Part shown: piece after piece, positions 2,437 through 48,340 of the stretch | Layout: every line of letters begins with the position of its first letter | Numbering within the stretch: position 1 is the first letter of the stretch | DNA from: Haliotis cracherodii | Lineage: Eukaryota | Length of the DNA: 64,000 nt | Reading direction: 5' to 3' | NCBI RefSeq assembly: GCF_022045235.1 | Contig: NW_027266297.1 | Span: 62,558,001 to 62,622,000, forward strand | Made by a program: the position numbers and the translations under genes | The notes under the pieces: generated by a model | The model's database searches: none | Seen by the model: the letters and a program-made list of their open reading frames with translations, nothing else | Told to the model about the DNA's origin: nothing

Positions 2437-4372
2437 GATGACGATGTTATGGGGGAAGGGAGGTAACTCTGTCTGGTTCAAGTGCAGTTGTCAAATATTT
2501 ATCTTTTCCCTTCATATTGCGCCAAAGACACACAGTAATTTTTGCTTGCTCCGCAAATAAGTTTTATGTCAAGATTAACAGCCCGCCAGCTCGATATGCC
2601 ACGGGAAAAGGGTGTACCAAGAAACTCAGGGTCGGCAGCAGGGCGTTTGTTCAGCCTAGAGGGTCTGGGAGAAAGAGGAAAGTTGTTCAGCAAGCGGATC
2701 TCGAGGTAGCGACGTCCGCCAAGCAGGCGAGGATTGCGAATGCCAGTTTCTCTCAACTACAGGGGCGGTCGGGTAGCCTAGTGTTGAAAGCGTTCGCTCG
2801 TCACGCCGAAGACCCGGGTTCGATTACCGACATGGCTACAATGTGTGAAGCCCATTTCTGGTGTCCCTCGCCGTGATATTGCTGGAATATTGCTAAAAGC
2901 GGCGTAAAACTATACTCACTCACTCTCTCAACTACATGTGAATTATCCCCCTTAGGTGATGATTTGGGTAGCAGTTTTGACAGAAGCGTAAGTATTACAA
3001 GTACTAGATCTCGAAATACTGCACAAATACAACGGCATAATTTCCAGCCAGAATGTGATAGGCCTATTGAGCGGCGACAGGTGTAAGGTTGCAAGGCTAA
3101 CGGCATTAGTCAGTCACAGGGGCTTGATGTGCATGACTTCTCACCATTTATTGCTCCTAAGCCTATCGTACTCTGCCAAGATAACTTAGGATCCAATATA
3201 CATAAAATCGTTAAGGAAAAAATGTAGGAAAAATAAGTATGTCGAATTAAGGATCTTTACAAACCAGTATGACTCATGAGTCTAAATGCACAAGGGGGTA
3301 TTGAGGTTAAAAGCCGCATATTATCCCAGAAACAACACACTCGAGGAATAGACGGATTATTTTTTTATATTTGTTAACATTTATCTGGAGAAATTTGGGG
3401 GCAAAACACAGCAAATGCTCAAATACATGAATATTGTATGCATGGCCCCTACAAAGATGAAGGGTTATGGTTGGCGTTCCTGTGATCAGCAGTTTTGACG
3501 TCATCATGCTCACAATCCGCTTGATCCATGGTCATCAATAATGACCTTTGGCTTGCGTTTGCAACACCATCATCAAGTGTTGGTATCAATCAATACCACA
3601 AACAAGATCGATGCCAAGGCCGATATGTTAAGCTTATCATGAAGACAAAACGCCAGCTTCCATGCTACGACTTCAGTCTGCCAAAATGTAGCTGCAGTGT
3701 GTGCAGATATGGAGATGTGTGTACTAGTTGCAGTAAGCCTCACCCTTTCCTACTTTGTAAGAGTACGTCAAAGTTGGCAAATAAATTCCCCTAATGGGAA
3801 AGCAACCTAGTTTTACCTGATAAATCACCAGTCAATGTAGAATTGTTATCAGCATTGTTAACAGATTAGCCAAACCGAGATACAACTGAATACCTATGGC
3901 AGGGGTTTTGTTTTGTTCTTAGTGTGTTTTTTTAAATTCAAGGTCCAAGGGAATATTTCCATAACATGATATCAGGTTCTAGATCTAGTGCTTGTAATAC
4001 TTATGCTGCTGTCAGAACTGCTACCCAAATCATCACCAAATCATTTCATGTAGTTGAGAGAAAGTGGCAGGCCCAATCCTCGTCTGCTTGGCGGACGTCG
4101 CTACCTCGAGATCCGCTTGCTGAACAACTTTCCTCTTTCTCCCAGACCCTCTAGTCTGAACAAACGCCCTGCTGCCGACCCTGAGTTTCTTGGCACACCC
4201 TTTGTCTCTGGCATATTGAGCTGGCAGGCTGTTAATCTTGACATAAAACTTAATTGCGGAGCAAGCAAAAATTACTGTGTGTCTTTGGCGTAATATGAAG
4301 GGAAAGGATAAATATTTGACAACTGCACTTGAACCAGACAGAGTTACCTCCCTTCCCCCATAACATCGTCAT
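2437..4372. repeat. Inverted repeat arms 2437-3010 and 3980-4372 enclosing plus-strand DIRS/Ngaro gag and start-of-RT remnants
   Basis: ORFs 2499-2756(-) and 4054-4293(+) translate almost identically. Interior plus-strand remnants 'IHKIVKEKM*ENKYVELR' and 'SPVNVELLSALLTD*PNRDTTEYLWQGF' resemble DIRS gag and the RT N-terminus. A further diverged partial copy lies at 4374-4550. Confidence 0.75.
2762..2923 (+). mobile_element. tRNA-derived SINE family 1 with (actc)n tail
   Basis: A box (tagcctagtg) and B box (gttcgatt). 13-bp TSD tctctcaactaca at 2749-2761 and 2924-2936. The empty site is seen in the inverted arm near 4049-4061. Confidence 0.9.
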
Positions 4373-4609
4373 GGTTTCTTAGCACACCCTTTGTCTCTGG
4401 CATATTGAGCTGGCAGGCTGTTAATCTGATAAAAAATTGATTGCCGAGCGAGCAAAACATATTTTGTCTGACTTTGGCGCAATATGATCGGAAGGGATAA
4501 ACATGTGACAACTGCATTTGAATCAGACAGAGTTACCGCCCTTCTCCCATAGAATAAAAACAGCAGTTGATAACTGAATTTTATAATTATACTAAAGATA
4601 CACTAAATT

Positions 4610-5490
4610 TATTCATCGTTTCACTTTTGGCAAATTCACTCAAATGTTATAATTGCCAAAAGTGTGGACATGGTGTTAGGTCTTGCACTGGCAAGACAGG
4701 ATGCTCATGCTGCAGTGGGGCTCATGAGACCTCCAAATGCACTTATGACATAAGTGTACTAACATCAAGCATCATCTTAATCACATCCGAATTCTGAACA
4801 TGAGACTAAAATCCTCAAAATCAAATGCACAAATAACATCTCCTTCTTTGAAGCGAAGAAATTAGTTCCTGCACAATCAACACGTACATCTAGTCTCACA
4901 TATTCAGCCGCAATTTCTTCTCCAGTTTTTATTACTAAAGTTACATTAGTTCAACATCGCCAAACAGCGATATCTTGGGTAAATGAAGCCCAGATTACCT
5001 TGGATGAAAATACACAAAAACTACACAAATCCCAGTCTGAGGAACCACAACCAGAAACAACACTAGAATCATCACAATTGGTAAAAATTGTTACGGTTTA
5101 AAATCCGTTTGAACCATTTGACATGGAGGTCACTTCTCCACACACAGTGCCTTAGAGTGGTTCTTCCACATGCTAAGGTTCCCCAGTTGAACCTCCATGA
5201 GCTGTTTCTAGGTCCTCTGCGAACCCACCCAATTGTAAACCATGGTTTACTGATGATTGCAAACAGGCTAGGAAGTGTAGGAAGAAGGGAGAAAAACTCT
5301 TTCGCCGTCATCCTACTGTTCATAATCTAAACACTGTAACAAAATAAAGTGCCAAGTCTTGAAGTCTTCGAAGAACATCGTATCAAACTTTTATTCACGT
5401 ACACCTATGACTAAGGTGTGGATCATGACACAAAAAGCAAAAGGACAGGTACAAATTCAGGTGTTGATAATCTTAAAGATGGCCATGATA
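4610..5490 (+). mobile_element. Internally deleted I/Nimb-like LINE fragment (ORF1 zinc knuckles plus ORF2 linker)
   Basis: 'CYNCQKCGHGVRSC...CSCCSGAHETSKC' and 'KPWFTDDCKQARKC'. Homologous to the - strand LINE at 6740-10810. Confidence 0.7.
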
Positions 5491-5819
5491 TATCAACTTA
5501 TAAATATGATGCGTGGTATAAAACCTAACGCAGGACGCATAAAACCCCAATTAACGCGTGACGCATAAAACCCCATGATCCTTCGACAACTTATATTGTG
5601 TCTCGATAAAATTCAAAATTGCTCACTTTAGAATGGCTTCAAAGTTTCACAGACCAAGACAAATTGTATATGTCTCTGTTGATAACATAAACTCAATAAA
5701 CCAAAGTAATTTTAGACAGCACTCCAATAAAGATTGTATAAAAAGCGAAGGATTAAATTTTTACCATCATTTGACGTTTTTACCACATGTTAAATATTTG
5801 AATTCCAAACAATTAGTTG

Positions 5820-6310
5820 CAGAACCGTACGTAACAGGGTTGAGGGAGCACAACGTTCAGCCTCGACGTCCAGCGATACGCCCAATTTTGCTTCAGTGTC
5901 ACCTTCTGGCACGCCTAGCTAGACAGCATCTGAGGCTCCAAAGACAACACCAGGACAGGGTACTGTTCTCATATGAGTCCTGATGTCGTCTCAACAGCTC
6001 TGATCGTCATGCAAGGGTCTACAGGCGTGCAGATGAAGGTTTTAATGATGCTTGCGTTACTCAGCGTCATCAGAATTTGGTGTAATGGCATGGGTGGCAT
6101 CACAACTACTGTGAGAACACAACTCATTACTGTAAATGGCAATTTGAATGGCGTACGCGACCGGCATGACATCATTCGAGATCGTGTTATACCTTTCGTG
6201 CAAATGCAGTGACGTAACGTTACATTTCAGGAGGATATTGCATGCATCTGTTGACGTTTTCAGGCAGCATAACATTGCTGTGCTGCCATGGCCGGGCATT
6301 TGGAACTATG
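5820..6310 (+). mobile_element. Heavily decayed Tc1 transposase remnant
   Basis: Broken frames give 'VQPRRPAIRPIL', 'DRVLFSYES', 'VNGNLNGVRDRHDII' and 'HNIAVLPWP'. Confidence 0.75.
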
Positions 6311-6739
6311 ACTCCTTCGACAGGTCTAGAACCTGGTAACCCAAGCACAGTTGGCACAATATTGGGTTGACATTTGGAACAACCTTTCCTAGCAAGCTTT
6401 CATGACAATTCTACCTTAAATATTCACTGCAACTTACCAAGAAACAAATATTGACTCTTTCATATATTATCTGATGCAACAATTGAAAATATGCTTTTCT
6501 ATCTTCACGAGATAAGATACTAGTACACTACTACAGTGATCAGCTGGTGATTGACAGCATGTGCCCAAAAAAGTTGCAAATTCAACTTTAAAAAATCAAT
6601 AAACATAACACACAAAAATCATGTTTTCGTAACTTTTAATATGTATTGTTGATTCGCCATATTGGAAGAACTGTAACCTTGAAAATGTTGCTTTGCAGCG
6701 CTACCATATTACTGCATTTATACACCCCAGCGACAATTG

Positions 6740-9700
6740 TTAATAAATTAGTTGATTGGTTTCGGATTTCTTTAATTTACTTAATGCAAGATCCACCTCT
6801 AGTTTTACAAACTGCCATGATGTAGAAGACAAAAGCTGATTGGGGGCTCTATTGTTAAGATTTATTTTAGCAACAGAAATATCTGATTGGAGTCTTATTC
6901 CAAGTGGTTGAATAAGTGAGGACTTTGTAGAGATTTCCATAAAGGGAATTAAAAACAAAGACATAGATTGGAGTCATTAGCATGTAAGTTAGAGATATAT
7001 TGTAGAGCTAATTTAATGCGACGGTGTTTAAGGCTCGTCATCTTCCACACACAAGCTATGAAAAGGCGAAGTTCTGAAGGCCCAAAGGCAATGCCTCAGG
7101 GCTTGAAGATGAATAGTATAAAGTCATTATAAATTGCTCTTACAAGCCCCACCATAGATGATGGAGCCATAATCAAGTTTAGAGCGGATAGTTGTTTGAT
7201 ATAGTTGGAGGATGTTTTTGTTATCCCCTCCCAACTTTGAATTGGAGAAAACTTTTAATAAATCCAGGGCCTTCAAGCATTTATTCTTTAAGTATTTAAT
7301 GTAGGACAGAAATGTCAAATGATGTAGAAAATTGGACCATAGAAATTGGCTTCCTTTTACAATTTATATGGGAGTGTTATCTCGAATTAATTCTGGATCT
7401 TTTGGGGTTTATATTTTCTACAAAAAATCTTTACAGCTTGTTTTAGATTTTGAAAATTTAAAACCATTTTCTAAAGACAATTTCTGTATTTTATTTAAAC
7501 ATAGCGGCAGTTGCCTTTCAATAGTATGCATGTTTTTCCCACGACAAGAAATATTAAAATCATCCACAAAGAGTGATCCATCAAGCGAATCATTTAAAAC
7601 TTTAGATAAACTGTTTGTCTTAATACTAAACAATGCGACAGACAAGATACTGCCAGATCCTGATTCTTATGATCAGACTTGAAATTGCCTGTCAGTTAAA
7701 TATTCTGATATAAATTTAGGCAAACAGCCTCGTAATCCAAAATCATGTAAATCTCTTAAAATACCGTGTTACCAGGTAGTGTCGTATGCTTTTCTGGATT
7801 GAAAAAGATTGACACTGCATGTTGTATTTAACAAATTATTCCAAGCGAACTAATTGATCTATGATACTTTTGTTTTTCCAGAAACCACATTGTATATTAG
7901 TGATAAGAATATTGAATTCCAGGTTGAAAACCAGTCGATTACTTATCATGCGTTCCATGGTTTTGCAAACGCAGCTTTTATTTGAAGGGTCGGTATGATC
8001 TCGACCGGGTTTGGGTAGTGGTATAACTCTAGCATCAGGCAATGAAGAAGAAAATTTCCCTGTCGTTCAAATTTCATCAAACCAGTCAATGTTTTTTCTA
8101 AAGATGAGTCAGGTAAGTGCTTTAGGAGTTGATAATGAAAGTTTTCAGCTACTGTAGTAGTATAGTGAGCTTGTCCAAGAGTTCATTAATACAGAATTGT
8201 TCATTATAATCTTCCCTGTTATCTAAATCAAAATTAATACGTTTCTTTTCTTGATGATTTTAAAAAAAATACGTTTTGAATTGAGGTGCATAGTTAGATG
8301 AGGAAGAGTGTTTTGCAAAAGATTTGCAAAGTTTATTTGCAAAATATGATTTATGAGTTAGTAAATGGTCCCCATTTTTAAGATGATGTATACTAGATTC
8401 AGTGCTTTTACCGTTGTTTGTTGTCATGTTCCACACCTTGGACATGGGGGTTCGTGAATATATATTTGAAACAAAACACCATGGCGTTTACTTTGTTTAA
8501 ATGTATGCCGTGCTTTTGCGTTAAAAATCTAAAACTTTATTAGCCATAGGATGTTGGTAGAAATAACGCTCCTCCTTTTTCCTTGCCTTCCTATCTCGCT
8601 TGCAGTCATCGGTAAAACATGGTTTACGTATGATGGGAATTCTAGAGGACTTTGGAACGCATTCTTCAGCTATTTTGTTGGGTTCATTGTAATGGGTCAG
8701 GAATGTCAGTAAAATGATCAGATTGGCAAAATAGAGAATGTCACATGGAGGCCAGTAAGCTTTGGCAAAGTTCCGTCGAGATGATGGAGGAACATCAGAC
8801 GGGGTAACAGGGTTAAGAATGGTTGGAAAGTGGCCACTTCCACAAAGGTCATCGTGGACTGACCACTCAAAATAATTCAGCAAGTTGAAATCTGTAATAG
8901 ACAAATCAAGGGAAGAGTATGTGCCTGTTCAAGGATGTAAATTAGGTTTTTTTTAATTATCATTAAAAAGGCATAGAGTATTGTTGGAAATAAAATCTTC
9001 TCGGAGTTTGACTTTACTGCTTGTATGATCACTATCCCACAGTGGATTATGTCCGTTCATATCGCCCATTATAATACAGGGCTCAGGACGCTGGTCACAG
9101 AGGGCTTGACGATCGGTTTGCTGAAGAGATGCAGATGGAGATGGAGATGATCTGTAGTTTTAAAGTAAGTTTCCTGCAAACAAAAGGCTGATGACTTAAA
9201 CTTGTGTTAGTAGCTGCAAATCATTAAACTTGTTTTTAGTCCTCTGCAATTCCATTGTGTAATAGGGTTAAAACAGGTCATGGTGGTTCTACTGGGGATC
9301 TTGACCGGGATGGAGGTCTAATCTTGTGGCCTGTTCGAGATTGATTGACCTCCAAATTGATGTTGAACCTTAACAGGTGTCAGCTGAGGAGAAGGCACCT
9401 TCAAGTGTTGAAGGGCACTGGCCGTTTTTCCGTTTCTTTTTTTCCGTTTTTGTTAAATGTATGTCTCCACGAATAGGAGATGATTCTGGTACTAAATTAA
9501 ATGTTTCTGATGATTGCACTAGCTCCGTCTGTGAAGCTGACGTTGCTCTTATTGTTACGCTTTGAGCTGTAGTCTTGTCGCATCTGCTGATTACCAACCC
9601 AAGAGATGGTTGGTTGGCATCCTACAGATACTGTGGCAGCTTTGACAACAGGAGTGACAGTTACAGCTGCTGAGTAAAATTGTGTTGAGTTGACAAAGTT

Positions 9701-35077: not shown

Positions 35078-38000
35078 CTACGAAAGAGATTCAGGCATAC
35101 AAGGGGACAAATATCGTTCATAAATGTCAACTGCTCGAGATACGTTCTCACCATCGTTTCGAGGTCCATCGATGTCAGGTTCAACATCTGAAGTGTCCTT
35201 TTCATTTTCATCAGATGCGTTATGTGTACCTTCACACAGGTGTACAGGGGATTGGGAATCATCAGAGGACGCAGCCATGTTTCTGTGCATGTCACTATAG
35301 TTTATTTCCCAGTACCTATGCAGGGGTTCATATCGTGTATCCATATGACGCATTTCCTCAACAACCAGAGCGTGTTCTGGGTCGTTTCCGTTGGCCAATC
35401 TTCTCCTAGAAACAAATATAGGTATGCGACATTCAAAATAGGTGTAATGTAGAATTATCAAGTCAACTAGAAACTCTTCAACACAAAGCTGCTAAAATAC
35501 TTCCTGGGCTCCCAAAGACAAACATCTGTATTATGAGTGAGTGAGGGTTTACGCCGCTTTTAGCAATGTTTGTCCATTATCGAAAATCAACATATCTTTA
35601 AGGCAGTGCAAATATGTATATGTCATATAAAGATATTTAGGTAGCTCATAAATGTACATGTTTGTCTTTCTTTTGTACATTCCAACAATATCGATTGGCT
35701 ATTTTCTCCATTAAGCCTAAGCATACCAACCGTGGACAAATCTGTGGTGCTTTACGCAGAAGGAGCAATAGCAATAGGATAATAACAATCAGCAGCAGAA
35801 CAGCCAGGATGATTCCCACGTCCAATATGTAGTTATGCTCAACAGACACTGAATACAAAAGAAGTACTTATAAAAAATACAATGGATCATGTTTCCACAC
35901 TTACATTTGTATCTCGTTGGGACATACACTCCTCCATGGCCGGGGCAAAATATATTTTGTTTACACCTATGCCTGCGTTCAAGATGAATGTCAACACATA
36001 CAGTTAATCACATATTCCATTAGGTTCAAAGAGAAATTATTTACCAGCTCCGCACATGCATTCTTTTGGGGTTTTGTTACCACCTGGTGAATACGGTTCG
36101 ACTATTCGAGTACAGGTACATTTAGAACTCATTTAGAAGTCCCAAGTATCCACGTTAAGCATAAAATTCCCCTGATGTCTTAAATCCTGGATAACTCGAG
36201 CTTCCGTCCAGGTCACCTCGAGTTAGACGCAACGATGTTCGACTGTACATGTAAGGCGATTTGATTGGTGTCCGTGTTGTCCTGTTATTGGTTTATTAGT
36301 GTCTTGACATGAAAATCATCATTACATAATTACAAACCGTCCAGAGTTTAGGAATGTATCAGCGTCTCTTTTTACCAAACATCTTTGTAACATCAGTCAT
36401 AGTTACATTATCAAATACCTGGCAGGTTGAATAAAACAAGCATTAAATAATCATATCCCCGTCAATCAGTCCCCAAGAAAAGCCAGGGAGTGGCTTCTTC
36501 TAAAAAGACAAGGACACTTACTAATATACTGATTAATGTGCTGCTGGCTGAATTGTACATGCTGTCATCTCTGTAAAGTTAGTGTCACTGGAAACAGGGG
36601 TCATCATCAAACCCTGCCCGTATTTTAGTGAATGGCTAGGCTGATAACTGTACACAGTTTTATCAAGAAATATTGAGTTTGAGTCTTTGAGTTATTCGCC
36701 GAATATAATCCTACCTACCCTCATTTAAGTCTAAATGCGATTTGCTGTCATGGAAATCGGAACAAACACAGGTCTCAATACCGAAGGCATCACAAACAAA
36801 CACAGTTCTAAATACATCACATCATCGCGAGACATATATATTATATATTTTAATAATAATTCATCGAGAGACTTATAGAGTATGTATTTCAATAATAGTT
36901 ATCACAAATACAAGCACACCATGCTTACCCTAAGATGCGACTATCGGGATCCGGTAGTCAGGCTCGCTGACTTGGTTGATTCAAGTCATCGATCCCAATT
37001 GCGTGGATTGATGCTCATGATATCAGTCACTGGATTGTCTAGTCCAGACTCGATTATTTACAGACCGCCGTCATATAGCTACACTATTGCTGAGTGCGGC
37101 GTTAAACAACAAACAAACAAACCAACCATTACAACTACATGTAGGATATACGTTTGCATAACATGTCCCTTTTCACAGCAATATTTAGTTGCCATTACAA
37201 GACTTAATATGGGAACTGTCTCATACTAACCTTTTCTATCAAGATCTGATTCTCTTGTCGATGAAGTTATTCCATCACTGCACCACTTAGATGTCTGGCA
37301 TATGTCAGACGTAGAACAGTTCTCCTTGCACAGTTTGTCACAGTCATTGTCATAGGTGGAATTACATCCAACCTCACACAATCCAGTCTGTTGTTCACAC
37401 ACACTCATCACACATGATCCACAGTTTAAGCTACAGTTTCAACCGTAGTATCCCTTCTTGCATCCATCAGCGCAGTGTCCGCTGTGGGTGTCGCACGTTC
37501 CTTGACATCCTGGGTGACACTGGATGCACCCCGGGCCATAATAGCCCAGTACACAGCCATGTTTACACTCGCCGTTCTGGTCACATTCATTGTGATAACA
37601 TCCTCTGCTGCATGCTTCTTTACACTTCTCTCCGTACCATCCGCGTTTACATCCATATTTACATTCCCCCGACGTTTTGTCACATTGTATGGGAAGACTT
37701 TTCGTTGAATTGGAATACACATCACAATGTATACTACATGTGTCACCACAGTGTTGCCCATAATACCCTGTTAAACATGTAGTACATTGTGCCGTTGTAC
37801 AATGTCCTGAACAGTTGTGACACACATGCTCACACTTTCCTCCAGTGTAATCGGCCGTACGCCTTTGGCATTCTCCTGTCGTGTAGTTACAGAGTTCACA
37901 TTGTTTCGAACATGATTTACACTGGGAACCAAAGTAAGAATCGACACAGTTTCCCCAGCAGCTGTCATTTTGCACGCAATAAGATCCAACACATCCAGAT

Positions 38001-40145: not shown

Positions 40146-41789
40146 ACCAAATTAGGTAAATCAAAATCACACTTCCTTTCACAATCCGGCCACTACTCGA
40201 TATTATACGTATGTTTCAATCATTTGCTGTCTCTGATTACCATTACAAATAAACTTACAACATTTTCACTGCCACGTACCTCATGGTGTACGCGTATACA
40301 TTGAATCAGTTAATGCTTATTTGTTGGTCATTCGCATGCATTACGTGCGTTATTGATATTAATAGCGAAAGACCCCCACTCAGTTTGAAAACTGTAAATA
40401 TATTTGTAAGTTTACTTACGTATAAGTTGGTCTGAAAATATATCGAGGGGTTAGTGCCAGAACCACTTATCTCCATTTTCCCTAGATGTGAGAAATCCCA
40501 CTTCAAAAGTTTGAAATGGTGCTAAAAAGCACCACTTGAAGTTTTATTAGCAATATTGTCTCCAGCCATTGTCATTAAGTGTGCCAAACAGTATATCTTG
40601 TTTTTTCAACATAACATTGATATTAACATGTAATAAAGATAACCTGAAATATATACGATGTTCTGGCATATCTCTTTCCCAAAGAAATTCAGCTAGACTT
40701 TCAGCCAAAGCAAAGTAAATAAAGGCAACTCCATCTGGCAGCATAAACATCATACAGGAAAGGGGAAATGTGAGGCCCAGATCCTTGTAAACAGAAGTGA
40801 TACATTGTGGCCCTGATAAATGATAACATTTCTGCTTGCGTCAAATTACCCCAAACACAGGACATACGTTTATGCTTCAGAAACTTTCTCAATGAGCAAG
40901 CCAATTAATAGCAATAACAGCTTATCTCCCGACAGCTGGTAATGGCTCAACCTCAGAGTCTGCGTGACACACAGGCTGATACCATTATCCTGGTGTAAGC
41001 TGACACTCTAAAGCATCGCTTGCTACAAACACGTGGTTATAATCACTTACCAGCTTTAACGATTATCTGGCATTGCCTAAAATAACTAAAGTAATGTCAG
41101 TGTTGCCTTTACCAAACATTGTTCATTTTATTAAATGCTGTACATTTACATTTACATTGCATTGTTTGTTTCAAAACTAAAAAGCTAATTAGTATGCAAA
41201 ATTAAGTTAATGTCAGGCTGTAATGCTAATGAGTGTAAATGTGTCACACAAAGTTAACGGAGAAACGTTATTCTATAAATTATAGATGAATAGAAGATCC
41301 TTTTAAAACCTTTGAGCAATTATTTGTTTATGTAAATATATATTCTTTTATGAAACAGTGGGTACATATTTAGCTTATTATCTATATACCAGTATATAAT
41401 ATATAAAGAGTGATAGATAAATAGATAGACAGATCTGTACCCAACGTTCAATTTTCAAAATGGTGCCATAACTCGCAGTATTCACAAAAAAATATAATAC
41501 TTTTTCAAGCTGAGCTTCATTCAAAGTCAATTTATGAACATACAAATACTGCAATTCTTAAGATCAGTTATCTCAGATTGTATTCGGATATCCAACCTAG
41601 CTGTCATAAGACATTTTAATGTGGTTACAATCATTTTACGTTCCTAACAGTAAATGGAATTCTTAGCTTGAACATTCACGCGATTGTTGTGGCTCACTAA
41701 AAAGGAAATTAATAAGGAAGTAATGCAGGAACTTGTCAGATATAATATAGCCAGGATCAGCATTTCAGAAATGTCAGACTTCCACAAAT

Positions 41790-41960
41790 CTGAGTCGGGT
41801 ATTCATGTTTAACTGCGGCATAGTATCTCAGCGGGCTGGCACAATAATATTGGCATTAGTCCGGACTAGTGCAATCACACGCACTTACGCACGCACGCGC
41901 GTACTCACACATAGCTATATTAGTGCGATAATGAACACAGCACCACAGTCACACATCATA
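41790..41960 (+). mobile_element. 3' fragment of SINE family 3 inside the Sola element
   Basis: gagtcgggtattcatgtttaactgcggcatagtatctcag matches 52969-53010. Confidence 0.65.
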
Positions 41961-44900
41961 TTATGCAATGTCTGTGTCATAGTCTTCCTCCATAGCATCT
42001 GGTACCGGTAGACAATCAGGTCTGTTACCAGTTGGGAGAGCTTTGTAGTACTCATGATATTCGCTTGGAATAATGCCAGATCTACAAAGAGATAACAAGT
42101 CTTTCTTCTTCGCATGTGATATTTCTTGCTTCCCAGTGTATCTACAAGTAAGGGAGTTGGTTGTGTTCAGAGGTCTTCCTCGTCTACTGCCTGCTGTAAC
42201 CTTGATTTCTCTGAACTGCTCATCATTGTGTTCAGTTTTGAAGTAAACGCTGTCAGGGCTAGTCTTCATAAACCGCAGCCAGCGAACATTTAGCCAGTTA
42301 ACTCTACCACCATCCGTGTCCACTTTAGTATTTTTCAGTCTTTGATGTGCCAATTTCTTGAAGTCCATTACATCCGTGTGTTTGATTGGAATAACGAGAT
42401 AGGGGTCCTTCCTTCTTGCCATTCTGATAACAGTATCCCACTGGCTGGGAACAAAAATACTTGTCTTCTTTTTGGCGAATTCAATACTGGAGTGAATTGC
42501 ATCGCACTCCATTTGGGTGTGTCCTGGCTCCAAGAATTTATGGTCAATGACATCAATGTGGTCAGTGGTAGTGACAGCATGAAGTAGGGAAGCAGCAACA
42601 TATTGGTTCCTATTCTGCCCTGTGCATGTATCTGAATACAGGATAACATGGTTGATGTTAGGAGGCATTGCTTTCAACTGTATTTGTAAACATGATGCAA
42701 TTTCGCATGAACCTCTCTGGGCATCAACCTCTGACCACAGAAAACATGTACCGCTCTTGTGAACAGCATCATGCACTGTGAAATTATAACAATTCAGTTT
42801 TCTCATATAGAAAATTTCGCTAACTAGCGAACATGGCGTGTACAATACTGCCTCAAGGTCAAATGTTCCAACAAAGACAGAGGATTCTGTCAAGGCAAGT
42901 GCTTTGTCCTTAATCTTTGCCTCTCGAGCTCTGATTTTTCTGGCTTGGTGTTCATTGAAATCCTTTGTTAATTGTTCTGTCAGGCAACCAGTGTCTCTTT
43001 CTCTGTAATATTGCTGACAAAGCGAACACTGGTCCTTCTTTGGTACATGGAAAGAAAAATTATATTCTTTATTGAAGACGTTTCTGTAGAGTGATGAGGA
43101 CACTGGTTCTTTGTTGTCTGCAGCACACCTTTCCTTATAAAGATCATACATCTTTTTAATATTCAATTCTGGTCCTAAAAATTGCCTGTTTGTATCTTTT
43201 CTTGTGTAGTGGGCATCCATCTTAGGAAATGACTCGATGTGTTCCCTTACTTTTGTCAAGCGATCACTAGCAGTTTTATTGTGTGGCTTATGTCTACCGC
43301 GACGTTCTGTGCTCCCAAAGGTTCCCTGGCTCTTGTGCTGTAAGGCATGGCTGATATATGACTCCCCAATGTCAAGTGTCTTCATGAAAAACTTCTTGCA
43401 AACAAGATGTCTTGTTCCTTCCCACTGTAGATTAAATGCCCGATAGACTTGGCGTTTCTTTTCCACCTTTTTTTCACTGTCATCCAGGTATGTACGGGTT
43501 TTCTTTTCATCAGTGTTGGAACAAACAAAATCCTTTTGCCTTTCATATGATGCCAAGCTTCTAAATGCTTTAAATATACTGTGTCGAGCTTCTTCGGGGA
43601 TCTTCTGGGTGCACTTATATCTACATTTTGAGCAGTCGACTGCTTTAACCGATTTTCCTTTCATGGTCTTCCCTTGCTGGTTCACATATTCCATTCCACC
43701 TAATCTCAGGTGTTTCCTTTGATTTTTTAACCATGTCTCGGGCGTCGCACGTCTCTTTCTAAACAACACCTTTCTAGGAGGTGTATGGAAGGCTGCCGAC
43801 TTTCTTGGAGTTGCAGATCGAGTTGGGTTCTGTTTGTTTGGGGTTGATGCTGTATTACCTGATGACACTGTGTCGTCACCATGCTGTGAAGATACTGGAA
43901 CTGGACTTGAAGTATTTGAACTGATCACAGGACCTTCTGGCATTACATGGTTGCGTTCATTTACAGCAGGACAAGAAACATCAGAGATGCTGATCGACTG
44001 GAGACAACTTGCAGCTGATTTGGACGTTCCAGGACAGGTAGCTCTAGAAGCACATGCTTCTGTTGTTTCATGTTGAGTACTTGAGTACTGAGAAGATTTT
44101 GTGATGTTATTTTCTATCATTGTGTTTGACAAATGGTTAGCCAGTGGTGTGCATGCATCATAATGATCTTCAATACCTTTTATGGATGTAAATGCGAGGA
44201 TTATTCTTCTCTCAGTGCATTGTTGACGAATTGTAGGTTGGACATCAATTACAGGAGTTGATGCCTTGCTGGAGAAAATACGGACACCACGACCTGACCA
44301 GTTAGCAAGTGCTAATGGCAGGAAATCAGCAACCTTATTGGTGAAATATCCATTCCTGCGAAGATGTTCCACTTCCAGTGAATAACTTTGCCATGTTTCC
44401 AGGTTGTTTTCCTCCACTTCAGCATAGAAATCAGAATAAGTGATGATATTATCATCAAGATGATCACACAGTTGTTTCCTCAGTTCACATTCACTCACAT
44501 TAAGTTGAAGTGCAGAAGCCTTAAAAAAGCAATTTCCATCAGCCGGTACCTTCAGTAACTTGTATCCATTACAATGCAGAAGCTGTTCTAATCTCTCCGT
44601 GTGAAACTTTTTCATTTGAGATTCATACATGTAGTTGGTATGACTTTCATGTAATGTCTTCAGAACAACAGTTTCCTCCAATTCCCCACTTGACCTTTCA
44701 TGAAATTTGCTATGAACAATATTCTTCTGATTTGGTATTGTCAATTCTGTTTCCGATTCAGTGGTGTCAGACGAGCATAAATCTTCTTCATTCGGAAGGT
44801 ACTCTTCGGATGATGTTTCGATGCTACTTTCAACATGTGTATGTCTATATTTCCCCAAATAAATTAAAGGTTCGTCATCAGAGCTGTCAAATTCATTTTC

Positions 44901-46835
44901 ATTTCCTCCCTCACTGGTATTACTGGAACGTGGCTCTATGTAGTCTTGAGGGGCTTTCGTATGCGTTGCCGACAAAGGATCTGTGTTGTCAGTAGTTTGT
45001 ACCTGATTAGCATCCATGTTGGTTGCCGTCAATGGATCTGCGCTGTCAGTGGTTGGTAGCTGATCAGTTTCCATGTTGGTTGCCGTCAATGGATCTGCGT
45101 TGTCAGTGGTTGGTAATTGATTAGCTTCCATGCTGGTTGCCGCCAATGGATCTGCGTTGTCAGTGGTTGGTAATTGATTAGCTTCCATGCTGGTTGCCGC
45201 CAATGGATCTGCATTGTCAGTGGTTGGTAATTGATTAGCTTCCATGCTGGTTGCCGCCAATGGATCTGGGTTGTCAGTGTTTGGTAACTGATTAGCTTCC
45301 ATGTTGGTTGCCGCCAATGGATCTGGGTTGTCAGTGGTTGGTTGTGGATTTGGTTCCATGCTCGTTGCCGTCAATGGAACTGTGTTGTCAGTTGTTGGTA
45401 GCTGGTGAGCATCCATGTTGGTTGCCGTCAATGGATATGGGTTGTCAGTGGTTGGTAGCGGATTCGGTTCCATGTTGGTTGCCGTCAATGGATCTGGGTT
45501 GTCAGTGGTTGGTAGCTGATTAGCATCCATGTTGGTTGCCGTCAATGGATCTGCGTTGTCATTGGTTGGTAGCGGATTCGGTTCCATGTTGGTTGCCGTC
45601 AATGGATCTGGGTTGTCAGTGGTTGGTAGCTGATTAGCATCCATGTTGGTTGCCGTCAATGGAACTGGGTTGTCAGTGGTTGGTAGCTGATTAGCATCCA
45701 TGTTGGTTGCCGTCAATGGAATTTGGTTGTCAGTGGTTGGTAGCGGATTCGGTTCCATGTTGGTTGCCGTCAATGGAACTGGGTTGTCAGTGGTTGGTAG
45801 CTGATTAGCTTCCATGCTGGTTGCCGCCAATGGATCTGCGTTGTCAGTGGTTGGTAATTGATTAGCTTCCATGCTGGTTGCCGCCAATGGATCTGCGTTG
45901 TCAGTGGTTGGTAATTGATTAGCTTCCATGCTGGTTGCCGCCAATGGATCTGCGTTGTCAGTGGTTGGTAATTGATTAGCTTCCATGCTGGTTGCCGCCA
46001 ATGGATCTGGGTTGTCAGTGTTTGGTAACTGATTAGCTTCCATGTTGGTTGCCGCCAATGGATCTGGGTTGTCAGTGGTTGGTTGTGGATTTGGTTCCAT
46101 GCTCGTTGCCGTCAATGGAACTGTGTTGTCAGTTGTTGGTAGCTGGTGAGCATCCATGTTGGTTGCCGTCAATGGATATGGGTTGTCAGTGGTTGGTAGC
46201 GGATTCGGTTCCATGTTGGTTGCCGTCAATGGATCTGGGTTGTCAGTGGTTGGTAGCTGATTAGCATCCATGTTGGTTGCCGTCAATGGATCTGCGTTGT
46301 CATTGGTTGGTAGCGGATTCGGTTCCATGTTGGTTGCCGTCAATGGATCTGGGTTGTCAGTGGTTGGTAGCTGATTAGCATCCATGTTGGTTGCCGTCAA
46401 TGGAACTGGGTTGTCAGTGGTTGGTAGCTGATTAGCATCCATGTTGGTTGCCGTCAATGGAATTTGGTTGTCAGTGGTTGGTAGCGGATTCGGTTCCATG
46501 TTGGTTGCCGTCAATGGAACTGGGTTGTCAGTGGTTGGTAGCTGATTAGCATACACGCTGGTTGCTGACAAAGGATCTGCGTTGTGAATGGTTGGTAGCT
46601 GATTAACATCCATGTTGGTTGCCGTCAATGGATCTGGGTTGTCAGTGGTTGGAAGCTGATAAGCATCCATGTTGGTTGCCGTCAATGGAACTGGGTTGTC
46701 AGTGGTTGGTAGCGGATTCGGTTCCATGTTGGTGGGTGGTTGTGGCACAATATGGTGTAATATCTGATTGTTCTCAATAATATTGCAAGCTTCCAAAATG
46801 TCTTGATCTTCGAAGTCAGAATCAAACTCACTCAT
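41961..46835 (-). CDS. Sola1-type DDD transposase fused to an OTU-like cysteine protease and a 19-aa tandem-repeat region (~1624 aa)
   Basis: Uninterrupted ORF. Likely ATG at 46835, just after a polypyrimidine/AG acceptor (46846); candidate donor GTGAGT at 47264. Motifs: VPADGNCFF...DHYDA (OTU); CSKCRYKC, VCKKFF, PKKDQCSLC; TFDLE, YSDTCTGQNRN, GHTQMECDAIHSSIE (transposase). Confidence 0.85.
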   Translation of the reverse strand: MSEFDSDFEDQDILEACNIIENNQILHHIVPQPPTNMEPNPLPTTDNPVPLTATNMDAYQLPTTDNPDPLTATNMDVNQLPTIHNADPLSATSVYANQLPTTDNPVPLTATNMEPNPLPTTDNQIPLTATNMDANQLPTTDNPVPLTATNMDANQLPTTDNPDPLTATNMEPNPLPTNDNADPLTATNMDANQLPTTDNPDPLTATNMEPNPLPTTDNPYPLTATNMDAHQLPTTDNTVPLTATSMEPNPQPTTDNPDPLAATNMEANQLPNTDNPDPLAATSMEANQLPTTDNADPLAATSMEANQLPTTDNADPLAATSMEANQLPTTDNADPLAATSMEANQLPTTDNPVPLTATNMEPNPLPTTDNQIPLTATNMDANQLPTTDNPVPLTATNMDANQLPTTDNPDPLTATNMEPNPLPTNDNADPLTATNMDANQLPTTDNPDPLTATNMEPNPLPTTDNPYPLTATNMDAHQLPTTDNTVPLTATSMEPNPQPTTDNPDPLAATNMEANQLPNTDNPDPLAATSMEANQLPTTDNADPLAATSMEANQLPTTDNADPLAATSMEANQLPTTDNADPLTATNMETDQLPTTDSADPLTATNMDANQVQTTDNTDPLSATHTKAPQDYIEPRSSNTSEGGNENEFDSSDDEPLIYLGKYRHTHVESSIETSSEEYLPNEEDLCSSDTTESETELTIPNQKNIVHSKFHERSSGELEETVVLKTLHESHTNYMYESQMKKFHTERLEQLLHCNGYKLLKVPADGNCFFKASALQLNVSECELRKQLCDHLDDNIITYSDFYAEVEENNLETWQSYSLEVEHLRRNGYFTNKVADFLPLALANWSGRGVRIFSSKASTPVIDVQPTIRQQCTERRIILAFTSIKGIEDHYDACTPLANHLSNTMIENNITKSSQYSSTQHETTEACASRATCPGTSKSAASCLQSISISDVSCPAVNERNHVMPEGPVISSNTSSPVPVSSQHGDDTVSSGNTASTPNKQNPTRSATPRKSAAFHTPPRKVLFRKRRATPETWLKNQRKHLRLGGMEYVNQQGKTMKGKSVKAVDCSKCRYKCTQKIPEEARHSIFKAFRSLASYERQKDFVCSNTDEKKTRTYLDDSEKKVEKKRQVYRAFNLQWEGTRHLVCKKFFMKTLDIGESYISHALQHKSQGTFGSTERRGRHKPHNKTASDRLTKVREHIESFPKMDAHYTRKDTNRQFLGPELNIKKMYDLYKERCAADNKEPVSSSLYRNVFNKEYNFSFHVPKKDQCSLCQQYYRERDTGCLTEQLTKDFNEHQARKIRAREAKIKDKALALTESSVFVGTFDLEAVLYTPCSLVSEIFYMRKLNCYNFTVHDAVHKSGTCFLWSEVDAQRGSCEIASCLQIQLKAMPPNINHVILYSDTCTGQNRNQYVAASLLHAVTTTDHIDVIDHKFLEPGHTQMECDAIHSSIEFAKKKTSIFVPSQWDTVIRMARRKDPYLVIPIKHTDVMDFKKLAHQRLKNTKVDTDGGRVNWLNVRWLRFMKTSPDSVYFKTEHNDEQFREIKVTAGSRRGRPLNTTNSLTCRYTGKQEISHAKKKDLLSLCRSGIIPSEYHEYYKALPTGNRPDCLPVPDAMEEDYDTDIA
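44967..46733 (-). repeat. Coding minisatellite, 31 x 57 bp, with a 741-bp higher-order duplication
   Basis: Unit about TNM(D/E)ANQLPTTDNPDPLTA. Units 5-16 recur as units 18-29. Confidence 0.95.
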
Positions 46836-48340
46836 TTTCCAATGCCTATAGAAAGAAAACAAAAAACATAAGAAAACAATACATAGCACTGGTCTTGAAA
46901 TATTTGTGTATGTGACATTATTTCTCAATTTACAATCTAACTTCATGTATCATATATTTACTCTTATGTAAACTTTACTTGTGTTTATGAAAGATGTTTA
47001 TGTTAAAAACACAAGTCTCACCCATGTCATTTACATACTATTTTATAGCAAAATTAACAAAAAATTCTCTGCGATTATCTGAAAACATCCAAGAACACAC
47101 TAAAAGTTAACGAACACTCATTTGATAATGACTTAAACATAAAAATCCGTTATATAAATCATCAGACGTGTTGTTGCGTCGTAACTTTATAACAATATAA
47201 GAGATCAATTTTCAAAAATTAGTAAAATAACAGATAATTTAATTAAATTTACAGTTTTACTCACCTTAAACGTATTTATGTTGATGAAAATAATTTGGAC
47301 TATGATATTTCCGTTGTAAGACGTTTGTGTAGTGGGGTTTATCTTCGACGCCAGGACCAAGTAATGACCATTAGTATAAGCTGACTGGAATTTGGCCCGG
47401 GGATCAGATATAAACATCCTGGGCCATAGAAGGCTAGCACCAGTTAACATCATCTGGTGCGGGGGAGCGCTATCTCTAATCGTAAACACAAAAAGCCAGC
47501 ACATCTCAAATGCTTATCAGTTGTTACGGCTCTCCAATTAAAGGAGTCTGAAGCCTATATCAGAGTGCTAGAATGTGTCAATTCTCGATACGTTTTTCTG
47601 GCTTAATAGAATTGAGTGAAAACTTTAATGTTGTGTATACCAGCATGTAGTATTTTAGTATAGAACATCCTGGCGCAACACGAGAACAGAGTTAAGTGAT
47701 AAGTTGTTTATGTCTTGTTGAATATCTTTTGAAATATACAATGTAGTACATAGATATTTTGGCGTAGGATTATATATGGTCATACAATGTTTTGAAAGTC
47801 ATAAAGTCAATTTTAATATTTTACAAGATAATGTGTTCTGGCACTAACCCCTCGATATGTTAGAAAATATGTCAGGGTCTGTTATGTTAAATTAACATTT
47901 GGTCCCTATGCCTATTAATTATTTATACGGGGCATTTGTTGCATAACATCTTTGTACAGACAATCTACACCTTCGTTGTATCTAAGTCACCATGTAATTA
48001 CGATTGAAATATCGCATTTGAAGCTTCATGTATTAAGATCACAAAATATGGTTGGTATTTTACAGGTTGTACACAAAGCACGAGAAACACTGTTATATAT
48101 TTACTCATGGTAAGAATCGGCGTTCAATCTCACCACATAATCATGATTAAAAATACTACACGAAATATTTACAAATTTTCGAACATAATCCATTCACCAA
48201 AATAAATAAAACTTTCCTAGATCTATCTGATGACAAATTAACAGAAGGTGACATCCATAAATTATCTTCCTTATTCAGATTTAGGTTCACGATAACAATG
48301 ACACTGGCAATATAAGTGGCAGCAGACATACGTAACAGGA

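Follow-up and report, generated by a model that had tools for sequence, protein, structure and literature searches.

Deubiquitinase-type domains recur in Ginger1 elements, Helitrons, MULEs and herpesvirus tegument proteins. OTU, Ulp1 and VTD domains are thought to help transposition in the Ginger1, Helitron and MULE elements that carry them (PMC2836005, PMC9741609). The question of their role is raised again by a locus of the abalone Haliotis cracherodii, which lies in a stretch of 64,000 nucleotides (contig NW_027266297.1, positions 62,558,001 to 62,622,000; here called the window). One long reading frame of this locus contains the motifs of an OTU cysteine protease together with those of a D-D-D transposase. 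What kind of element encodes this protein, is the OTU domain a conserved part of it, and which role could the domain play? All coordinates given below are positions in the window.

Boundaries, copies and age of the element

The ends of the element were located by alignment of its copies against each other. The window element occupies 40444-47854 (7,411 bp), is bounded by perfect 20-bp TIRs and is flanked by the 4-bp TSD ATAT, which is present in identical form at 40440-40443 on the left and at 47855-47858 on the right. Inter-copy homology stops exactly at the left TIR, CGAGGGGTTAGTGCCAGAAC (40444-40463, forward strand), whose reverse complement forms the right TIR (47835-47854, reverse strand) that is common to the copies. 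Five copies possess matching 4-bp duplications of their own, namely ATAT (window copy), ATAT (C13), AAAT (C2), AAGT (C4) and ATCT (C6), which is far beyond chance. All five have a length of 4 bp and the pattern A-N-N-T; AWWT is matched by three of them and AWDT by four, with ATCT as the deviating one.

Between the TIRs lies a single transposase reading frame on the reverse strand, as the earlier note had described, the TIRs and TSD being outside the interval 41961-46835 to which that note referred. Beyond the stop codon, the element continues with a 3' non-coding part of about 1.5 kb (40464-41960, reverse strand; 98-100% identity in six copies), and no ORF of at least 80 aa was found from 41000 to the stop codon of the transposase frame. 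The 5' non-coding part (46947-47834, reverse strand; 99-100% identity in five copies) presumably contains promoter and leader.

The frame is uninterrupted in three copies, the window copy, C4 and C2, the last with an in-frame deletion of 22 codons, and it is frameshifted in C13. The three intact frames differ pairwise by 5-7 substitutions in 2.9 kb. Copy divergence in this genome is about 0.2%, which indicates that the family moved recently. A comparison with the older, decayed copy C36 gave a dN/dS of 0.55, a value that is based on few sites and carries little information, and the 5-7 differences between the young copies are too few for such a ratio. We consider it probable, with a confidence that covers the best explanation as a whole, that the window element belongs to a set of about six very young copies of a Sola1-type DNA transposon, which would be autonomous and move by cut-and-paste.

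Domain organization of the encoded protein

The ORF (41961-46946, reverse strand) comprises 1661 aa. Its likely start is Met38 (codon 46835-46833), as the sequence from this residue on resembles the acidic N-termini of relatives, and this would yield a protein of 1624 aa. From the N- to the C-terminus, the domain order is a repeat arm of 31 units of 19 aa, an acidic linker, the OTU domain, a basic patch, Cys clusters and an RNase H-like core with a D-D-D motif. The repeat arm is encoded by a tandem array of 31 x 57 bp that was delineated with TRF (44965-46733, reverse strand), and the 19-aa unit is a Pro/Thr/Asn/Asp repeat. The number of units varies between copies (31, 19 and 20), and the window copy is longer by 684 bp, corresponding to 12 units. 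The array is part of a lysine-free stretch of 626 residues (aa 38-663), the first lysine after Met38 being residue 664. The Ser/Asp/Glu-rich acidic linker that follows (44589-44957, reverse strand) shows conserved DEPL and SSD-type motifs in the consensus of a 19-sequence alignment of relatives (A1), with a mean identity of 20% among them.

The OTU domain and its catalytic triad

The OTU cysteine-protease domain comprises aa 787-935 (44142-44588, reverse strand), with Cys806, His928 and Asp930 as the catalytic triad. The Cys loop VPADGNCFF starts at residue 800 and the His loop DHYDA at residue 927. Asp803 and Cys806 are encoded by 44540-44538 and 44531-44529, respectively, and His928 by 44165-44163. 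The window protein alone matches Pfam OTU (PF02338) with an E-value of 0.05 and 14.6 bits, which is below the cut-off of 23.3, and its OTU matches in a PDB search were likewise sub-threshold. Among the aligned OTU domains of the family, 42 of 49 match Pfam OTU at E < 1e-3, the best one at 1.5e-11, and a family profile searched against the PDB retrieved OTUD3 (2e-14), Otu2 (1e-13) and OTUD5 (1e-10). An AF2 model of the domain reached a pLDDT of 92.7 and could be superimposed on OTUD1, OTUD3, Otu2 and DUBA (OTUD5) with Z-scores of 17.2-17.5 and an rmsd of 2.2-2.5 A over 136-144 residues (Foldseek, VIA-align). Every one of the best 50 structural matches was an OTU domain.

The triad is retained almost throughout the 104 OTU-transposase fusions found among the relatives, with Cys in 90 of 91, His in 100 of 103 and an acidic position (D/E/N) in 99 of 103 sequences, or about 97-99%. 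Also the domain as a whole stands out as a conserved island of 36% identity between linkers at 15-20%. As judged from family profile, model and triad conservation, the domain has the OTU fold with an intact Cys806/His928/Asp930 triad. The proposal of an OTU domain with catalytic motifs made in the earlier note is thereby borne out. That note had also named loss of the Cys/His pair or of the entire domain in other family members as a result that would speak against it; in the 104 fusions, the triad is retained with the few exceptions given above.

The fold by itself does not give specificity. The domain could act on another ubiquitin-like modifier or function chiefly in ubiquitin binding or scaffolding, and in this respect it is relevant that nairovirus OTUs, which also cleave ISG15, match the model as well, with a Z-score of about 13. 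VTD activity has been shown biochemically, whereas no transposon OTU had been assayed as of a study of 2022 (PMC9741609). However, the near-complete retention of Cys, His and acid argues for catalysis, and the best matches OTUD1, OTUD3, OTUD5 and Otu2 are ubiquitin-specific enzymes. We therefore think that a different modifier or a mere scaffolding function is unlikely, and from sequence and model we infer that the domain has deubiquitinase activity.

The transposase part and its probable assignment to Sola1

The transposase part comprises aa 1016-1661 (41964-43901, reverse strand) and has 363 homologs; its conservation was judged from A1 and from a second alignment of 36 sequences (A3). It includes a family-conserved, basic NLS-like patch (RKRR...RK; 43704-43811, reverse strand) with the A1 consensus RKRKxxPExWKKNxRK, and contains the zinc-finger-like cluster CSKCRYKC (43611-43634, reverse strand), whose cysteines are invariant or nearly so in A1 and A3. 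The RNase H-like core (42447-42896, reverse strand), to which a C-terminal domain is joined, carries Asp1363 (codon at 42860), Asp1439 (42632) and Asp1482 (42503), all three of which are invariant in both alignments. The positions that the earlier note had given for these three codons and for the two OTU motifs were all correct. An AF2 model of the transposase part (pLDDT 82) is RNase H-like and was matched by Foldseek to TnsB, IstA, Mu and retroviral integrases; the structure prediction thus agrees with the domain assignments of that note for both halves of the protein. In the model, strand 1 carries the first catalytic aspartate, the second comes after strand 4 and the third lies on the next helix, which is the canonical order of strands and helices. 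The Sola transposase is reportedly described as a D-D-D enzyme by Bao et al. 2009.

The core is named only as DUF7869 by Pfam, which was matched by 34 of 36 relatives, while the window protein alone stays below the DUF7869 cut-off. DUF7869 relatives are common in arthropods and have lengths of about 620-750 aa, which fits published Sola1 elements. A TSD of the form AWWT or AWDT is regarded as a hallmark of Sola1 (PMC3845634), a group of the Sola superfamily (Bao et al. 2009, as cited in PMC3845634 and PMC4455052). The Sola1-like features noted before are indeed present, both the 4-bp duplication of the A..T form and the core with its D-D-D residues. From the TSD pattern, the D-D-D residues and the likeness to DUF7869 proteins, an assignment to Sola1 as known from its published descriptions would fit.

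The name DUF7869 and the one TSD that reads ATCT would also agree with another DDD/DDE superfamily, for which the A..T duplications would be coincidental in AT-rich targets. This is rather improbable, as all five TSDs share 4 bp and the A-N-N-T pattern and two sister families of the same genome have the TSD AATT, and as the D-D-D residues and the arthropod relatives agree with published Sola1 elements. Moreover, Pfam searches of the ORF and its relatives matched no piggyBac, hAT, Tc1, MULE, PIF or integrase (rve) domain. The Sola1 type is thus the assignment we prefer.

An old mollusc lineage of OTU-transposase fusions

The fusion of both domains is not restricted to the window element. In all 104 fusions (63 of 63 and 41 of 41) the OTU domain is N-terminal of the transposase; the frame is continuous, the order invariant and the identity 38-57%. 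Where members are named, they are from gastropods and bivalves. The OTU-bearing transposases form one clade with a support of 100, in which 33 of 43 rows possess the OTU domain and the other 10 are truncated models; no OTU-less member with room for the domain was found in this clade. A single gain suffices for this distribution. Among the OTU-negative relatives, 4 of 57 have at least 150 aa upstream of the transposase without a detectable OTU domain. On these sequence relationships, the fusion is an old, monophyletic mollusc lineage with a single ancient gain, and the retention of the domain across the deep mollusc radiation argues that it is needed.

The earlier note knew of no described OTU-Sola lineage, and no description of an OTU domain with Sola was found in the literature searched. 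This part of its claim stands, but the window element is no isolated case of capture. The fusion defines an old lineage of more than 100 members, which databases already label automatically as "OTU domain-containing protein". Mollusc annotations of that name often represent transposases.

It could still be argued that the OTU domain travels along as a passenger, either as a fragment captured from the host or as a product of its own, with no bearing on transposition and not synthesized in one chain with the transposase, as the NCBI model P0001 comprises 719 aa of transposase only. However, this model represents C13, the copy with the frameshift, whereas the frame is continuous in the three intact copies and in the relatives, and the domain goes back to one ancient gain with its catalytic residues retained. 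Furthermore, no close host paralogue of the OTU domain was found in this genome. A passenger is consequently very improbable, and we regard the domain as an integral part of the transposase.

Proposed role of the OTU domain

The explanation that we favor, and consider likely on the basis of the sequences and models, is that of a Sola1-type transposase with an active OTU deubiquitinase that supports transposition. One intron-less gene would give rise to one polypeptide, in which an OTUD-like OTU thiol protease precedes the D-D-D transposase, and the transposase would thereby carry the deubiquitinase to the transpososome. There, the OTU domain would most likely strip ubiquitin from the transposase itself and so shield it from proteasomal or extraction pathways. 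Alternatively, ubiquitin on chromatin or on repair factors at the break may be the target. In either case, the removal of ubiquitin would support transposition. The earlier note had suggested the same possible targets, besides a cleavage of the repeat arm, and saw in them a potential counter-defence.

OTU-like proteases of RNA viruses combine the self-processing of polyproteins with an action on ubiquitinated substrates. By analogy, the OTU domain could cut its own precursor to free the repeat arm or the mature transposase. The long unconserved linkers on both sides of the domain would be compatible with such a cleavage, as would the sequence LRLGG at aa 1079-1083, which resembles the ubiquitin tail and is located directly before the DNA-binding part. 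However, across the family conservation is limited to the second glycine of this motif, the preceding residue being T, S, Q, R, E or others, so that conservation does not support self-cleavage at LRLGG. Also no other Gly-Gly is conserved, all three GG of the abalone protein being lineage-specific, and the nearest structures are cellular deubiquitinases. We think that self-processing is quite unlikely, and that a deubiquitinase acting in support of transposition is the better explanation. The near-identical natural abalone copies with intact frames make a genetic test of the OTU domain feasible.

Sister elements with an adjoining F-box/LRR frame

Sister Sola1-like transposases of the same abalone genome (L034-type) are adjoined by an F-box/LRR ORF, which lies two codons upstream of the transposase. 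This arrangement is not a fusion broken by a stop codon, as four further copies retain the TAA, with an ATG two codons beyond it, so that the two are neighbouring ORFs. F-box/LRR proteins are substrate adaptors of SCF ubiquitin ligases, and their presence in the sisters hints at the ubiquitin system as a general battleground for the superfamily. It is tempting, though on balance doubtful, to go further and to assume that mollusc Sola1-type transposons have repeatedly been armed with ubiquitin modules, as in the OTU clade and the F-box/LRR sisters. In that event, ubiquitin control of transposases might be a real host restriction pathway with these modules as counter-measures, and the lysine-free arm might be a further means to escape ubiquitination.

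Comparison with known systems

With Sola1 elements, the window element shares TIR-bounded cut-and-paste transposition, the 4-bp A..T duplication, the D-D-D residues and one long transposase ORF. It differs from them by the additional N-terminal OTU domain and, in abalone, by the 31-unit repeat arm, and its protein of 1624-1661 aa is longer than the product of an insect Sola1 ORF in the literature, which has about 630 aa. Bivalve Sola1 elements are long, with a mean of 5.4 kb (PMC10294476).

Ginger1 likewise combines a cut-and-paste transposase with an OTU cysteine protease in one ORF and generates 4-bp duplications (PMC2836005). Ginger1 elements with OTU or Ulp1 occur in invertebrates, including the mollusc Aplysia (PMC2836005). 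In contrast to the DUF7869 core and N-terminal OTU domain described here, the DDE core of Ginger1 is of the Gypsy-integrase type, and its OTU domain is C-terminal. The N-terminal OTU and the absence of an rve/integrase match in Pfam rule out that the window element is a Ginger1.

Helitrons and Helentrons also encode OTU- and VTD-type deubiquitinase domains with retained catalytic residues (PMC9741609, PMC4067079), but these elements are of the rolling-circle type, encode Rep and helicase and have neither TIRs nor a TSD. As the window element has both, and as its ORF contains no Helitron domains, it does not belong to them. Two other sets of multi-copy ORFs were observed in this abalone genome, one of Helentron-like ORFs of 2,600-2,800 aa with Herpes_teg_N, OTU and DUF6570, which are unlike the window ORF, and one of 912-aa ORFs with OTU-like matches.

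The cellular proteins OTUD1, OTUD3, OTUD5/DUBA and yeast Otu2 share the fold, the D-G-N-C Cys loop and the H-x-D His loop with the domain studied here, but the identity is only 16-24%, and the latter is embedded in a transposase. MULEs that carry Ulp1 (KI-MULEs, cited in PMC2836005) resemble the abalone element as DNA transposons that keep a protease for ubiquitin-like modifiers over long periods. Their Ulp1, however, is a SUMO protease and another member of the clan, the transposase is of another superfamily, and the protease is often encoded by a separate ORF. With the mollusc lineage, a third class of transposases, unrelated to the others, is seen to retain an OTU domain whose predicted triad is intact.

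Structure and recent movement of the element

A single open reading frame of 1661 aa spans window positions 41961-46946 on the minus strand and contains the interval 41961-46835, for which the earlier note had proposed a Sola1-type transposase fused to an OTU-like deubiquitinase. Translation of this frame places the likely start, Met38, at 46835, the motif VPADGNCFF from residue 800 (Asp803 codon 44540-44538, Cys806 codon 44531-44529), the motif DHYDA from residue 927 (His928 codon 44165-44163) and three Asp codons at 42860, 42632 and 42503, all exactly where that note had put them. In 16-kb alignments of six loci against the window, homology breaks off at the same two points. These are marked by perfect 20-bp terminal inverted repeats (TIRs), CGAGGGGTTAGTGCCAGAAC, at 40444-40463 and 47835-47854, and in the window copy the target site duplication (TSD) ATAT follows directly outside (40440-40443 and 47855-47858). 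The common break points, TIRs and individual TSDs define an element of 7,411 bp, which is wider than the interval first noted. Outside it, a repeat of about 200 bp (36918-37126) is 86-88% identical to sequences near two other copies, C2 and C6. It probably represents a common short interspersed repeat with no relation to the element.

Searched in six frames with the transposase part, the window's genome (1.18 Gb, 80 contigs) contains other loci with 96-100% identity, together with older broken relatives, and the best match outside this genome is a Haliotis rufescens protein with 99% identity. Each of the five complete copies is bordered by its own 4-bp direct repeat, namely ATAT in the window copy and also in C13, AAGT in C4, AAAT in C2 and ATCT in C6. 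Three copies have unbroken frames, of 1661 aa in the window, 1433 aa in C4 and 1430 aa in C2. The C2 copy (G000:C2:44530332-44537049, G000 being the window's own assembly) is otherwise intact and has an in-frame deletion of 22 codons within the RNase H-like core (residues 372-393 of the C-terminal 646-aa transposase piece). Frameshifts interrupt the C6 and C13 copies, C67 and C1 are truncated, and C36 is an older, decayed copy in which the OTU region is still present with 90% aa identity. Copies differ in length because the number of units varies in a tandem array, which in the window consists of 31 units of 57 bp (44965-46733; 89% identity, no indels). The intact copies have 31, 19 and 20 units, and the 684 extra bp of the window copy correspond to 12 units. 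With the array set aside, just 5-7 substitutions in 2.9 kb separate the intact copies (dS 0.002-0.005). With probes from the element's ends, the window's genome yielded ~6 young copies and ~5 older fragments, and no miniature derivatives. The family is low-copy and has moved very recently.

Transposase core and probable assignment to Sola1

The last 646 residues have 363 homologs at E <= 1e-3. In an alignment of 36 relatives, 34 are recognised by Pfam DUF7869, and the window protein itself scores 21.9 bits, just below the 26-bit cut-off. Asp1363, Asp1439 and Asp1482 are invariant in the alignments of relatives. The AlphaFold model (pLDDT 82) has an RNase H-like fold, in which Asp1363 lies on strand 1, Asp1439 behind strand 4 and Asp1482 on the helix that comes next. 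Foldseek matched it best to TnsB, IstA, Mu transposase and retroviral integrases with low TM-scores, so that the predicted fold class is clear, without a close solved relative. A basic patch (43704-43811, minus strand) and Cys clusters (e.g. 43611-43634, minus strand) upstream of the core are conserved.

Sola transposons are defined by a D-D-D transposase and 4-bp target duplications. A published insect Sola1 ORF, with 630 aa, is shorter than the 1661-aa frame of the window element, and the DUF7869 clusters contain mostly arthropod proteins of 620-750 aa. One paper names a 4-bp AWWT/AWDT duplication as a hallmark of Sola1 (PMC3845634, citing Bao et al. 2009). All five TSDs read A-N-N-T; AWWT fits three and AWDT four of them, and ATCT deviates from both. 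The 4-bp A-N-N-T duplications and the invariant D-D-D fit the Sola1 claim, with ATCT outside the consensus on which it had partly been based. Two more distant DUF7869 families of the same genome also have TIRs and AATT duplications. On these published features we consider the element very likely, though not proven, to be Sola1-type.

The OTU domain

Taken alone, the window protein gives weak matches to Pfam OTU (E 0.05) and OTUD3 (E 0.03), and the evidence becomes strong at the level of the family. When a 200-aa OTU piece was run with HMMER against all 1.84 billion representatives, 336 relatives emerged, many of them within long proteins. Pfam OTU matches 42 of 49 aligned family domains, and the family profile matches OTUD3 (2e-14), yeast Otu2 (1e-13), OTUD5 (1e-10) and OTUD1 (1e-7). 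The structure predicted by AlphaFold (pLDDT 92.7, pTM 0.85) agrees with this assignment: the leading Foldseek matches are all OTU deubiquitinases (OTUD3 E 2.4e-8, target TM 0.77), and VIA-align superposes the model on OTUD1, OTUD3, Otu2 and DUBA with Z 17.2-17.5 and rmsd 2.2-2.5 A over 136-144 residues, nairovirus OTUs following at Z ~13. The putative triad is intact, with Cys806 in D-G-N-C and His928 and Asp930 in H-Y-D, which is the usual OTU arrangement. The OTU-like domain with catalytic motifs that had been read from the window is hence borne out by profile, modelled fold and triad.

Conservation of the fusion

Among the 120 best transposase relatives, 63 contain both domains, and the OTU domain is N-terminal in every one. 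Most of the other 57 have almost nothing before the transposase match (a median of 3 upstream residues), which indicates that most of these OTU-less models are truncated; four have at least 150 upstream residues and no detectable OTU. None of 120 sister-family relatives carries the domain. A tree built from 75 transposase cores groups the OTU-bearing rows in one clade of 43 (33 with OTU, 10 truncated models, no OTU-less protein with room for it) with an SH-aLRT of 100, and a single change explains the OTU distribution. Loss of the catalytic residues, raised as a possible objection, is not the pattern in 104 fusion proteins, where 90 of 91 retain the Cys, 100 of 103 the His and 99 of 103 the acid. 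Averaged over pairs, the OTU domain is 36% identical, the linkers on either side 15-20% and the transposase 44-57%. A one-off capture is ruled out by the 63 fusions, the single fully supported clade and the kept triad.

Named sources are gastropods (Haliotis, Littorina, Batillaria) and bivalves (Saccostrea, Pinctada, Mytilus); a few relatives recorded in bacterial bins are probably host contamination. The earlier note knew of no described OTU-Sola lineage. Our literature search for Sola with OTU found no paper, and UniRef already labels several relatives 'OTU domain-containing protein', so the architecture is visible in databases but undescribed in the literature searched. What the earlier note had read is confirmed and extended: this is an autonomous transposon, in all likelihood of the Sola1 type, that has moved recently and encodes a transposase with a conserved domain of the OTU deubiquitinase kind.

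Related elements in the same genome

L034 (G000:C7:3519000-3528500) contains a sister DUF7869/Sola1-like element at ~2847-6857 on the minus strand, with TIR CGTCGCCTGAGAACC and TSD AATT, from a family of at least five copies (others in L046-L049). It includes a 232-aa F-box-like and LRR ORF (6283-5585; Pfam F-box-like 46 bits, E 3.8e-12), a putative ubiquitin-ligase adaptor gene within a transposon. Its TAA stop is kept in four other copies, and the transposase ORF starts two codons past it in the same frame. A third DUF7869 family, in L035 (G000:C6:2673500-2683000, ~2595-6697; TIR GAACGGGTCGGGGTAAC, TSD AATT), has a second copy at G000:C1:80724357-80727798. The L035 element sits in a common short repeat, whose other copies represent the empty site, and has an LRR-like ORF (3393-4046), just below the Pfam cut-off, in a different frame from the 620-aa transposase ORF, whose start it overlaps. 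Dozens of matches to a fragment of a Sola1-like transposase (34-36% identity, with stops), spaced mostly ~2,642 bp apart, lie at G000:C47:20177-121334 and G000:C45:17399411-17426659, where a long tandem array seems to have arisen by amplification of a transposon fragment.

By profile search, the genome's other OTU-like domains are mostly in multi-copy, intact ORFs of 2,600-2,800 aa (L058, G000:C38:56393-59878, and more than 20 similar loci) that combine Herpes_teg_N (VTD deubiquitinase), OTU and DUF6570. With two deubiquitinase-type domains each, they belong to the Helentron type of rolling-circle elements published for molluscs. At least 12 further loci have intact frames of ~912 aa with a weak OTU-profile match (E ~1e-6; e.g. 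G000:C30:1790428-1790838, C12:30456642-30457052 and C1:49841489-49841899), probably another OTU-bearing mobile-element family.

Possible role of the OTU domain

One polypeptide joins a catalytically equipped OTU domain to a D-D-D transposase, and the combination is kept by selection in an active lineage. The OTU domain is very likely an active protease, and ubiquitin is its probable substrate. The transposase would carry this putative deubiquitinase to the nucleus and the transposon ends, where its targets would be the transposase itself, or chromatin or repair proteins close by; a specific counter-defence role is rather unlikely.

The domain could also be a self-processing protease, and LRLGG (43698-43712, residues 1079-1083), just after the basic patch, does resemble the ubiquitin C-terminal tail. 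Against this, only its last Gly is conserved in relatives and the family alignment holds no other conserved Gly-Gly; the likeness is probably a coincidence of sequence, and self-processing is less likely than action as a deubiquitinase. N-terminal to the OTU domain, 626 consecutive residues without lysine (44958-46835, residues 38-663) take in the N-terminal head, the repeat arm and the beginning of the linker, and there are just two arginines across residues 38-742; the remainder of the protein contains 8.3 lysines per 100 aa. The repeat arm is found in the abalone family alone and its unit number varies between near-identical copies, and the lysine-free stretch beside a deubiquitinase-like domain is suggestive but unproven.

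Protease-bearing DNA transposases are already known, and an OTU domain on a Sola1-type transposase is a new form of them. The role that we infer for the window element is the one proposed for the OTU and Ulp1 proteases of Ginger1 and the VTD and OTU domains of Helitrons (PMC2836005, PMC9741609).
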